Made by a program: the position numbers and the translations under genes. 64,000 nt of DNA from Adineta vaga (lineage: Eukaryota; Animalia; Rotifera): the NCBI GenBank assembly GCA_021613535.1, contig CP075497.1, positions 12,152,001 through 12,216,000 on the forward strand, in the 5' to 3' direction. Below are positions 24,227-30,493 of the stretch, in pieces. Under the pieces are notes generated by a model. That model made no database searches and had not been told where the DNA came from. It was given only the letters and a program-made list of their open reading frames with translations. Numbering within the stretch: position 1 is the stretch's first letter; each line of letters begins with the position of its first letter.

Positions 24227-26094
24227 TTATTTTGATGTATTAAGATAAGATCGCCATCCACCCAAATGTGTGATATCTTCTGCATTATCTAAAGCCGATG
24301 ATTCAACAAGAAAACCTTTAACAATTTGTCCATCTTCAAGAATAATATTTCCAATTGAAAGTGGTGATGGAATTAAACTCATAAAACTTGCAACATGTTC
24401 AGTTGGAAGAGCCCAAATTTCGATTTCAATTCCAGGACCTTGATTACCAATAACACGTATTAAACCAGGTTTAGGTGGTGTTGTATTTTGAAGTGCATAG
24501 AGACGATATTCATGATGAGTACGACATTTACGAACAAATTGACCATGGCGTTCAATTAATTGATAATTTAATGGTTGATCAGATAAATGAGCACCAACAA
24601 CAGCAAGAAGAAAATAGTTCATTTGATGACTGTCTGTTATAGATAATTTTGGTGTGTTGGATAACAAACGTGTTGAACCGGCGATAGTCTTTGAAAGCGA
24701 ACGATGAATACGATCTCCAAGTAAAAGAAGTGCATTATCTGTAAATGCATGACTAATTAAAGTCACACCAAATGGTAAACCATCCGAACGAATACCAGCA
24801 GGTAATGCAATTGCTGCTAAATCAAGTAAATTAACAAAATTTGTATAATATCCGAGATGGCTATTAAGTTCAATTGGTGAATTATTTATTTCATCGATTG
24901 TATAAGTTCGAGGTGCAGTTGGAACTAACATAACATCGAAATTTTCCCATATTTTATCTGTTTGTTTTTTTAATCGTTCAAGTTCATAAATTGCATTGAA
25001 AACATCAACTGCGGAATAATTTTTTGATTTGGAAATAATTGAATGTACAATTGGATCGGTATCGGATTGATGTTCATCAATAAAATGACCAACAGCAGCA
25101 TAACGTTCAGCGACCCATGGGCCTTTATAAAGTAAACCGGCAACATTAAGAAAAGGTGTCAAATCAAATGGAATGGCTTCACCATCCAAATCACGTTGAA
25201 TTATATCAATAGCATTTTGAAATAATTTCGGATTTTCTGAATCACCAAAAAATTCACGGGTATTTTGTGTTGGAACACCAAATCGAAATTTTGCGGAGAT
25301 AGCCCATGGAGATGCACCTGAAGAACATGATGGTTGACGAGAATATGGATCTAATTCATCAAAACCACGAGTGATTGACAAAATCAATGATGCATCAAAT
25401 GCTGTTTCAGCAAATATTGAAACACAATCAAGACTTCGACAAGCAGGTACAACACCTCGACTACTAAGAAGACCACGAGATGGTTTCATGCCAATAATAT
25501 TATTAAACATTGCAGGAACTCTACCTGATCCAGCCGTATCTGTTCCCAATGAAAATGTTACCTAAGAAAACATTTCAACGATACGATTAGAATTCTTTGA
25601 AAACTTACTAAACCACTGGCAACAGCAACTGCCGAACCAGAACTTGATCCACCAGAGATATAATTCTTATTGAAAACACATGCACAAGCACCATATGGTG
25701 AACGTGTACCAACTAAACCTGTTGCAAATTGATCCATATTGGTTTTACCAATGAGAATTCCACCGGCTTGTTCAAGTTTTTGTACAACTGGTGCAGTTTC
25801 GATTGCTGCTTTACAACCAAATACTGGACATGCTGCTGTTGTAGATAAATTAGTAACATCAATATTATCTTTAACAGCAAATGGAACACCATAAAGTGGA
25901 AATTTACAACGATCTTCTATTGATATTGTTAATAATTGTTTGACTTTTTTCATTGCATTTTCTCGAGATATTACTGAAATCCATATGAGTTTTGTACCTT
26001 CGTTTTCTATACGATCATAAATAGAATTAATCGTGTTTGCAAGAGCATTTGAATCAGTTGAATAAAGTTGATGAAGTTCACTGATGTTTGGCAT
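24227..26094 (-). CDS. atzF: Allophanate hydrolase (amidase-signature N-domain + C-domain), one 47-nt intron at 25562-25608
   Basis: FAVKDNID, GKTNMDQFATGLVGTRSPYG, GGSSSGSAVAV, GTDTAGSGRVP, NSHLGYYTNF, C-domain VVGAHLS...GGWRSY. A gtaag...ttag intron joins the two ORFs in frame. Confidence 0.95.
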
Positions 26095-26781
26095 TGAAGT
26101 TTGAATATTATTTGGAAAAATTCTAAATCAATAAGGACGATATTTTATATCTATTTCTCTATAAAATGCCATGAACTTCTTGAAAAGATAATATGCATTT
26201 AATAATAAACACAAATGTGATGTTCTTATCACAGAATAGATAAAGATAAAGAGAATTGTTTTCGTCATCCGACGATAATCACGCATTCTCTGTATGTTCA
26301 CTCGCGCGAACCAGATAATATACAAGTCACTTGAAAGAGAAATTTCGACTGGATACACGAATATAATGGCTTCTATGCGATAAAGACAGTGTAAATAATT
26401 CTCGTTTAATATAAGAATCAATAAGAGAATGAATAGAAAGCAACTTGAAATCAAAGTTCAAAATGTTTATCTCACGTGCGAATAAAACTTAAACAAACAG
26501 ATAAGATATCGTTTAATTTACAAAGAATCGTTTCTAAATCTAAAAATAATATAAATACTATGCTATTTTTAGTTAAACTGAATCATTCTATTTGGACAAT
26601 ATGACATTTTCACTCTAACAAGAACAACGTCCGACATATATGGATGAAACGTAATAACTGACGGTTTTTCTATTTATTTATCAATCTATATCGTGTAAGT
26701 GTATATACGTAACCCCGGCCTCGTCATACGATAAAATCAGAGATAGTTATAACTAGTTCAATAGGTTCATCTGAAGATAAA
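26095..26781. promoter_or_regulatory. Putative bidirectional promoter of allophanate hydrolase/urea carboxylase, GATAA-rich
   Basis: Head-to-head ATGs about 690 bp apart. I count about 12 GATAA/TTATC sites and one CACGTG (~26473). Confidence 0.55.
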
Positions 26782-29700: not shown

Positions 29701-30493
29701 TTTAGTTCTTGGTCTTGGTGATGTTTATCTTGGTGCACCATGTGCAATTCCAATTGATCCACGTCATCGATTAGTTACATCAAAATATAATCCAGCACGA
29801 ACATTTACTGCTGAAGGAACTGTTGGCATTGGTGGTGTTTATATGTGTATTTATGGAATGGATTCACCGGGTGGTTATCAATTAATTGGTCGATCTTTAC
29901 CAATTTGGAATACATTTGTTCGAAATGATGCTTTTAAAGATAATAATCCATGGCTTTTAAGATTTTTTGATCAAATCCGATTTTATCCTGTCGATGAAAA
30001 AGAACTTTTAATTCAACGTCAAGCATTTCGAGATGGCCGATTACAAATACGAATTATTGAAGATAATGAATTTGATCTAAGTGAATATGATCAATTTCTT
30101 CAACGAGAATCAGAAAGTATTCAGAATTTTATTAAAAAACGAGATCAAGCTTTTAATGAAGAAATTTCACATTGGGAAAAAGATGAAGAAAATAATAAGA
30201 ATTCAAAATTAAATGATAAAATTAATGAAATTCAAGAAAATCAAGAAAATCAAGACGATGATGATGATGAAAATATAAAAACAATTCGTGCAGATATTTG
30301 TGGAAGTGTTTGGAAATTATTAGTTGAATTAAATGAATTTGTAAATATTGATACACCTGTTGTTATTTTCGAAGCAATGAAAATGGAATTAATTCTTCGT
30401 TCTCCTATTGCAGGTAAAATTACTTCAATTTTATGTCATATTGGACAACTTGTTACTACAAATGATGTTCTTTTAAAAATTCAATCGATGTAA
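26782..30493 (+). CDS. uca: Urea carboxylase (biotin carboxylase - carboxyltransferase - BCCP), one 49-nt intron at 27697-27745
   Basis: [99 protein letters not shown], and biotinylation motif EAMKM. Confidence 0.96.

Follow-up and report, generated by a model that had tools for sequence, protein, structure and literature searches.

Introduction

To our knowledge, animals normally have no way of recovering nitrogen from urea without microbes, whiteflies being the known exception. The whitefly Bemisia tabaci carries, as genes acquired from bacteria, a urea carboxylase (UC) and an allophanate hydrolase (AH), described as BtUCA and BtAtzF or as DUR1,2 and AH, and these genes have been shown by experiment to steer the synthesis and recycling of nitrogenous waste (PMC4607527; PMC10836729). 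A UC–AH gene pair also occurs in a bdelloid rotifer, Adineta vaga, inside a stretch of 64,000 nucleotides (C6:12152001-12216000, the window in what follows) of chromosome 6 in a six-contig assembly of 100.8 Mb. The pair is likely to be a nickel-free, ATP- and biotin-dependent system for turning urea into ammonia, transcribed and under selection, whose UC and AH came from separate bacteria and were joined in an early bdelloid.

In rotifer and whitefly alike, bacterial UC and AH genes have entered an animal by horizontal transfer, are integrated among host genes and are expressed. The whitefly genes, however, are on separate scaffolds and are both placed with gamma-proteobacteria, whereas those of the rotifer stand head to head, contain an intron each, have discordant relatives and are older than the split between Adineta and Rotaria. 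The rotifer acquisition took place in a different phylum and independently of that in the whitefly, and whilst the function of the whitefly genes has been tested, that of the rotifer genes is read from their sequence.

Among bacteria, urea-type operons such as an alphaproteobacterial one (L018) and that of Bradyrhizobium ontarionense (L100) encode a UC that is 59-61% identical to the rotifer enzyme, has the same asparagine (Asn) at the specificity position and is found without the carboxyguanidine deiminase CgdAB. These operons differ from the rotifer pair in being co-directional, nearly abutting and intron-free, with a GC content at third codon positions (GC3) of about 0.7 and an AH of about 42% identity. 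Guanidine operons, reviewed in PMC12186494 and found in Granulicella mallensis and other Acidobacteria, encode CgdA, CgdB, guanidine carboxylase and AH. The rotifer AH is sister to the AH of these operons (60-64% identity), and AH acts on allophanate in the guanidine and urea pathways alike; but the rotifer has neither CgdAB nor the aspartate (Asp)-type carboxylase, and the carboxylase of the guanidine operons is only 47-48% identical to rotifer UC.

Fungal Dur1,2, with solved structures from Kluyveromyces lactis (3VA7, 4ISS, 5I8I; PMC5770610; PMC3073912), shares both modules, their chemistry and the urea-type Asn with the rotifer pair, whose proteins can be aligned over their full length with the solved K. 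lactis structures. It differs in being a single fused polypeptide, and fungal sequences score below bacterial ones against the rotifer proteins.

Horizontal gene transfer into bdelloids is itself well known and includes biosynthetic gene clusters (PMC3499245, PMC5916493, PMC11258130). Like other bdelloid acquisitions, the urea pair consists of bacterial genes with gained introns, host composition and expression; the bdelloid reports, by contrast, cover clusters of the non-ribosomal peptide synthetase/polyketide synthase (NRPS/PKS) type and genome-wide catalogues. No discussion of rotifer UC or AH was found in the literature searched, and the main text and supplements of Boschetti 2012 and Nowell 2018 are silent on them. 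The Gene Ontology (GO) table in the supplement of PMC11258130 does contain two A. vaga gene models, g35204 and g47365, which may correspond to this locus; they belong to a differentially expressed set and carry the terms urea carboxylase, allophanate hydrolase and urea catabolism. A preliminary description of the window had put the pair forward as its best candidate for a novel system. That claim is overstated, since an animal with acquired UC and AH was already known in the whitefly and the GO terms for A. vaga were already published. The feature that stands out is that two genes of discordant descent now make up a divergent pair which is both conserved and mobile.

Origins of the two genes

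Searches were queried with single exons or with the stored protein P0121. Among the matches listed, the nearest non-rotifer relatives of UC are bacterial, at 59-61% identity, the named ones belonging first to Alphaproteobacteria, Bradyrhizobium and Roseomonas among them, and then to Gammaproteobacteria and Verrucomicrobia. The nearest relatives of AH among the matches listed reach 60-64% identity, and here the named ones are Granulicella and Tunturiibacter (Acidobacteria). Close relatives of the two proteins do not come from the same operons. In the matches listed, the operon with the best UC (61%; urtABCDE-UC-AH, L018) includes an AH that shares only 42% identity with rotifer AH, and the operons with the best AHs (64%; CgdA-CgdB-UC-AH, L017 and Granulicella mallensis L099) have a UC of 47-48%. 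No non-rotifer locus combines a close UC with a close AH among the roughly 80 genome and 80 metagenome loci listed. K. lactis scores lower than bacteria for both proteins, with bit scores of 917 versus 1281 for UC and 445 versus 617-646 for AH.

The same discordance is found in the trees. In the UC tree (80 rows) the rotifer sequences make up one clade (support 100), placed inside the bacterial clade of urea type or alongside it, and apart at full support from the CgdAB-type clade which holds the acidobacterial UCs. In the AH tree the rotifer sequences, again one clade (99-100), are sister (100) to the AHs of Granulicella and Tunturiibacter and lie inside the CgdAB-type AH clade, a placement that also holds under a site-heterogeneous model. 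Exon 2 of the AH of a second A. vaga pair, described below, entered the tree with X at its frameshift and stops. Approximately unbiased (AU) tests reject both a grouping of rotifer UC with acidobacterial UC (delta lnL 234, p 2e-6) and a grouping of rotifer AH with its counterparts from urea-type operons (delta lnL 112, p 9e-4). A foreign, bacterial origin is thus supported by these comparisons for both rotifer genes. The preliminary description had proposed that the pathway was horizontally acquired, and in this it agrees with the trees, in which both rotifer clades sit among bacterial sequences. It had also taken the pathway to have been acquired as a unit and had suggested phylogenies of the two proteins as a check for a shared donor; this part is not supported, as AH and UC have significantly discordant bacterial relatives in different operon types and a common placement is rejected by the AU tests.

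The likeliest history would be that of two transfers assembled in the rotifer. An unlikely alternative is that both genes came in one transfer from a bacterium, so far unsampled, whose hybrid operon had a urea-type UC beside an acidobacterial-type AH, one gene being inverted later. Nearly all the bacterial loci examined have UC and AH side by side, as rotifers do, so that co-transfer would be the simplest physical route, but the bacterial pairs are co-directional rather than divergent. Bacterial sampling is incomplete, each scan having at least 600 matches, which favours the single transfer; even so, none of the approximately 140 two-gene bacterial loci listed pairs a UC of more than 50% with an AH of more than 52% identity to the rotifer's, and every close AH with a visible partner among the matches listed has a CgdAB-type UC, at 43-48%. 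The rejection of concordant placement by the AU tests likewise opposes it. To be set on the other side are a UC donor lineage that varies between trees, and an algal study which also finds incongruent histories of the two subunits (bioRxiv 10.1101/2024.05.16.594469).

Gene models and integration into the host genome

The contig bearing the pair is 13.9 Mb long, and the gene models are given in Table 1. AH has a total length of 606 aa and is the same protein as the database entry P0121 ('hypothetical protein I4U23_031111 [Adineta vaga]'), both parts of which equal the two exon translations (that of exon 2 matches residues 163-606 at 100%). UC comprises 1220 aa, and splicing rebuilds its biotin-carboxylase motif RLQVEHPVTE, the joint falling after RLQ. 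AH and UC are two genes on opposite strands with separate transcript contigs, and not a fused polypeptide of the Dur1,2 type. The preliminary description had reported an intact AH on the minus strand and an intact UC on the plus strand about 690 bp apart, each with one intron of about 48 nt and with host-like codon usage. These observations were borne out: the pair is present with a spacing of 687 bp, the introns measure 47 nt (AH) and 49 nt (UC), both GT..AG, and GC3 in the four exons is 0.09-0.12 versus 0.11-0.15 in the neighbouring kinase, kinesin and SCAP-like open reading frames (ORFs). The nearest bacterial homologues have a GC3 of 0.54-0.73. AH and UC are fully ameliorated to host composition.

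Table 1. Features of the AH–UC pair, in window positions
Feature	Position	Strand	Size and boundaries	Content
AH exon 1	25609..26094	-	162 codons from ATG at 26094	N-terminal part of amidase-signature domain
AH intron	25562..25608	-	47 nt, GT..AG, GTAAGT...TTAG	
AH exon 2	24227..25561	-	444 codons + stop	C-terminal amidase-signature part and AH_C
Divergent intergenic spacer	26095..26781	.	687 bp between the two start codons	
UC exon 1	26782..27696	+	305 codons from ATG	Biotin carboxylase N-terminal and ATP-grasp domains
UC intron	27697..27745	+	49 nt, GT..AG, GTAAAA...TTAG	Within the RLQVEH motif, after RLQ
UC exon 2	27746..30493	+	915 codons + stop	Biotin carboxylase C-terminal, carboxyltransferase A-B and C-D, biotin carboxyl carrier protein (BCCP)

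In contigs from the public runs X1 and X3, which belong to one study, and X5, from another, exactly positions 25562-25608 and 27697-27745 are skipped, the AH joint being listed as 25557>25605 with an ambiguity of 4 nt. The UC joint, 27696>27746 ('skips 49, GT..AG'), is found in X1, X3 and X5 and is absent from X9, a DNA-like run in which one contig passes through the AH intron into the spacer. Positions 26176-26372 of the spacer are without cover in the transcript-like runs X1, X3 and X5 and are covered in X9. The A. vaga genome contains no intron-free copy of AH or UC able to mimic splicing. The three runs are read as transcripts because introns and spacer are both missing from them and the genome has no such copy. 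Both genes are spliced and transcribed, both introns being precisely removed in transcript-like contigs of three runs. On the AH side these contigs reach as far as 26111, which is 17 nt upstream of the ATG, and the UC contigs start at 26641-26759; from these contig ends and from the geometry of the locus, the spacer is presumed to be a shared bidirectional promoter.

The contigs of all four runs, X9 included, continue into unlike sequence at two window positions, 26545 (in the spacer) and 30451. The spacer has a single match in the assembly, and since it is unique in this haploid assembly, the loose end shared at 26545 probably reflects structural variation between alleles of the sequenced strains.

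Ratios of nonsynonymous to synonymous substitution rates (dN/dS) are 0.17-0.40 in comparisons with Adineta steineri, Rotaria sordida and the A. vaga paralogue, and they indicate that AH and UC are under purifying selection. UC and AH are horizontally acquired, domesticated animal genes: integration, introns, composition, transcription and selection all agree. Domestication had been claimed in the preliminary description too, and is seen in the 13.9-Mb chromosome, the host GC3, the removal of the introns and the purifying selection.

Genes of bacterial type often turn out to be contaminants when they appear in animal assemblies, and one hit, from a spider assembly, is flagged UNVERIFIED_CONTAM. 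The explanation of the pair as contamination or misassembly, or as vertically inherited eukaryotic genes which other animals have lost, nevertheless has next to no probability. Against an artefact stand the spliceosomal introns removed in transcripts, a GC3 like the host's, a position inside a chromosome of 13.9 Mb among eukaryotic genes, a second copy on the same chromosome, and orthologues in independent assemblies of A. steineri and three Rotaria species. Against vertical inheritance, the nearest relatives are bacterial at 60-64% identity and K. lactis scores lower; absence from other Metazoa is judged only from the named matches of the protein searches. Contamination, misassembly and dead DNA were ruled out by the introns, GC3, chromosome context, paralogue, other species and dN/dS.

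The pair is flanked by eukaryotic exon-sized ORFs for a protein kinase, a kinesin motor, a sterol-sensing domain and WD40. Of the neighbours named in the preliminary description as clearly metazoan genes, MSK and kinesins, a eukaryotic protein kinase and kinesin motor ORFs were found. About 1 kb past UC, also on the plus strand, is an ORF for a short-chain dehydrogenase (adh_short; window 31542-32270). A long terminal repeat (LTR) retrotransposon of Ty3/gypsy type lies 8 kb downstream of UC on the minus strand (window 38379-44787); its open frames are gag, of 648 codons, and pol, of 1312 codons, with reverse transcriptase, RNase H and integrase.

Catalytic equipment and substrate

Searches with Pfam found in AH an Amidase domain, spread over both exons, and AH_C (E 2e-46), and in the UC exons, in order, Biotin_carb_N, CPSase_L_D2, Biotin_carb_C, CT_A_B, CT_C_D and Biotin_lipoyl. 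The E-values for the two proteins range from 1e-34 to 1e-96, except for Biotin_lipoyl at 1e-9, and are beyond chance. AH can be aligned end to end with the solved AH of Granulibacter (4GYR, E 2e-184). Exon 1 carries the motif FAVKDNID, with the catalytic lysine, and GGSSSGS, and exon 2 carries GTDTAGSGR with the nucleophile serine; all three align with the solved AHs 4GYR, 4CP8 and 4ISS, the Ser-cisSer-Lys motifs being kept. AH thus appears enzymatically intact and is predicted to hydrolyse allophanate to ammonia and CO2.

Exon 2 of UC aligns with K. lactis UC (3VA7) over 909 residues (E 1e-274). The general-base lysine of the carboxyltransferase (KlUA K1605; PMC5770610) corresponds to K680 of UC exon 2, which is invariant in alignment A1 and lines up with the lysine of K. 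lactis TKYNP. The biotin-attachment motif EAMKME is present in the same exon. The glycine-rich loop reads GSGGNG versus a consensus of GGGGIG, and the nearly invariant biotin carboxylase columns of A1 are, by eye, kept.

Of the bacterial enzymes annotated as urea carboxylases, about 75% are predicted to carboxylate guanidine; such guanidine carboxylases have CgdAB (carboxyguanidine deiminase, DUF1989) as a partner and Asp where urea carboxylases have Asn (PMC12186494). For the present comparison, 64 bacterial loci were classed by the presence of CgdAB or urtA beside the carboxylase, and alignment columns separating the classes were then sought. One Asp/Asn column splits them, with Asp in all 36 CgdAB-linked loci and Asn in all 28 urea-type loci; this specificity column was derived empirically from the alignment and is consistent with the published rule. 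Asn occupies it in the window UC (N409 of exon 2), in all 16 of the other rotifer sequences and in K. lactis. Nineteen columns separate the classes. The urea-type residue is found in 16/16 rotifer homologues at 16 of these and in all but one at two more, and the CgdAB-type residue occurs in rotifers only at a single Val/Leu column, in nine of the 16 and in the window copy. No match to DUF1989/CgdAB (PF09347) was found in the whole 100.8-Mb genome, whilst control genomes responded, and none lies beside the pair. Urea is the best-supported substrate for UC, because the predicted specificity residue is Asn and the genome is without CgdAB; on this point the preliminary description, which had assumed urea, appears to have been right.

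It is very improbable that the carboxylase acts mainly on guanidine or on another small amide, the pair then being a route of guanidine detoxification or assimilation. Such a role could be suspected from the predicted prevalence of guanidine carboxylases among annotated bacterial urea carboxylases (~75%; PMC12186494) and from the descent of rotifer AH from a CgdAB-type (guanidine) operon. Every rotifer copy, however, has the urea-type Asn at the specificity position, urea-type residues dominate the 19 class-separating columns with the one Val/Leu column as sole CgdAB-type exception, and rotifer UC groups with urtA-linked carboxylases. The carboxyguanidine deiminase that converts carboxyguanidine to allophanate is absent from the genome. 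A guanidine pathway as the principal interpretation was ruled out by the Asn residue together with the absence of CgdAB.

Distribution in bdelloids and the second A. vaga pair

Named homologues come from A. steineri, R. sordida and two further Rotaria species, all in independent assemblies, and in many unnamed contigs the ORFs are split where the intron would lie. The head-to-head order is found also in A. steineri (L016) and in two contigs of a long-read environmental assembly (L014, L015). The divergent pair is kept in several bdelloid lineages, and the two-gene divergent organisation emphasised in the preliminary description is therefore retained in related genomes, head to head in A. steineri and on environmental rotifer contigs. 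In one of the latter (L014:9021-12745) AH is a single ORF of 627 codons without an intron, and two UC ORFs overlap by 4 nt with no intron between them. Intron presence varies among bdelloid lineages, since neither AH nor UC of L014 has one.

A head-to-head pair is also present on the AT-rich metagenome contigs L116, L117 and L121 (GC 0.32), where UC and AH are both intron-free and separated by a spacer of 129 bp. The L117 pair (L117:445-6087) encodes a UC of 1220 aa and an AH of 616 aa. These contigs carry, as flanks, intron-split pieces of a major facilitator superfamily (MFS) transporter and a Harbinger-type transposase. Their AH has a very long branch and is nested deep within the bdelloid clade, protein P0073 behaves alike in the UC tree, and the contigs appear to belong to a fast-evolving rotifer-like lineage. 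They were considered as a low-GC bacterial donor with a divergent pair, a candidate ruled out by the eukaryotic flanks and by the position of the AH within the bdelloid clade.

Within A. vaga a second pair, again head to head, lies at C6:3937041-3943080, on the same chromosome and 8.2 Mb from that of the window. It shares 77-79% protein identity with the window pair and has introns at the same positions. Exon 2 of its UC contains three nonsense codons at conserved positions and exon 2 of its AH a frameshift, the AH being annotated by NCBI as a protein of 582 aa (P0128). The paralogous pair is broken in this assembly. Similarity between the two copies ends at the borders of the 6-kb pair, which means that the pair was duplicated or moved as a cassette.

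Nitrogen metabolism in the genome

Urea transporters of the UT family are encoded at two loci in A. vaga, one of which (C5, L102) is an open frame of 990 codons resembling a UT-ankyrin gene of A. steineri (see below), and arginase-family loci number at least five. For urease alpha the genome has a single locus, C2:13457461-13459572, which matches the family model in five fragments, summing to about half the curated cut-off and with in-frame stops in three of the five. It looks like a decayed relic.

Proposed history and mechanism

Nitrogen would be recovered in two steps. The biotin carboxylase domain of UC would charge the biotin on its own BCCP, and the carboxyltransferase would pass the carboxyl group to urea, giving allophanate. 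The separate AH, an amidase-signature enzyme with a Ser-cisSer-Lys centre, would then split allophanate to 2 NH3 and 2 CO2. Allophanate would reach AH by diffusion; in K. lactis it diffuses between UC and AH, and separate UC and AH are reported to form no stable complex (PMC5770610), so that none is expected of the two rotifer proteins. The nitrogen could come from the animal's own urea, arginase-family genes being present, or from imported urea, UT-family transporters being present, and the pair may accordingly serve in nitrogen recycling or scavenging.

The UC donor would have been a bacterium with a urea-transporter-linked UC operon, and the AH donor, a separate one, would have had an Acidobacteria-like CgdA-CgdB-carboxylase-AH operon. 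Both genes would have been brought together in an early bdelloid, before the split between Adineta and Rotaria, each gaining one short intron and host composition and the two coming to stand head to head. Later the 6-kb pair would have been copied as a cassette, copies being lost, unlinked or inactivated according to lineage, with one A. vaga copy now decaying. It may further be suggested, tentatively and with confidence falling somewhat short of even, that the pair is a module absent from the sampled bacteria, with two donors, one divergent promoter and a 6-kb cassette that has been moved and duplicated, and that it replaced the now-relic urease.

Several points weigh against separate transfers joined into a working urea pair. 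A. steineri has a lone, intron-free UC (L010:9980-13651) with no AH within 10 kb, and the UC of R. sordida is likewise without AH within 10 kb. The lone A. steineri gene is the closest relative of the window UC and lies 6 kb from a 973-aa fusion of a UT urea transporter with ankyrin (L010:19499-22420); it could be a retrocopy that landed near the urea transporter. A six-frame search of the A. vaga genome for the biotin-ligase domain PF03099 (BPL_LplA_LipB; E <= 0.001) gave no match. Animals require a biotin ligase for their own carboxylases, and the blank search is probably an artefact of exon fragmentation, the effect of short exons or of an intron-split gene; UC would have to be biotinylated by a host ligase. 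The RNA nature of X1, X3 and X5 is a tool's guess, the transcript reading coming from the absent introns and spacer, and the activity and substrate of the enzymes are likewise deduced from sequence.

Further points concern the ancestry of the genes. Both collection scans for relatives of UC and AH gave at least 600 matches each, and the closest bacterial relatives are under-sampled. The trees are without fungal, algal and whitefly sequences, whose greater distance is argued only from the K. lactis bit scores, and the groups compared in the AU tests were named after the trees had been seen. The position of Spartobacteria as sister of rotifer UC (96 in the SH-like approximate likelihood ratio test, SH-aLRT, in the 80-row tree) is lost in a FastTree of 120 hits, in which the rotifer UCs are sister to all urea-type bacteria with a support of 74. 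The Spartobacteria protein P0078 was rejected as a candidate UC donor, as the sister relation is gone with all 120 hits and its contig begins at UC, leaving any AH partner invisible.

Implications

If the pair did arise from independent transfers, it would stand as a clear case, in an animal, of a metabolic gene cluster put together out of separate horizontal acquisitions. Its apparently mosaic make-up bears on whether eukaryotic gene clusters arise by selection for linkage after separate acquisitions, and the unlinked copies in A. steineri and R. sordida, together with the decayed A. vaga paralogue, provide a natural contrast. The case is small and open to experiment, with two genes, one spacer, a known chemistry and an avidin-sensitive assay. 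If the reading proposed here is true, bdelloids would be a second, independent and much older case of an animal recovering nitrogen from urea, which bears on their life on nitrogen-poor detritus and on their survival of repeated desiccation.

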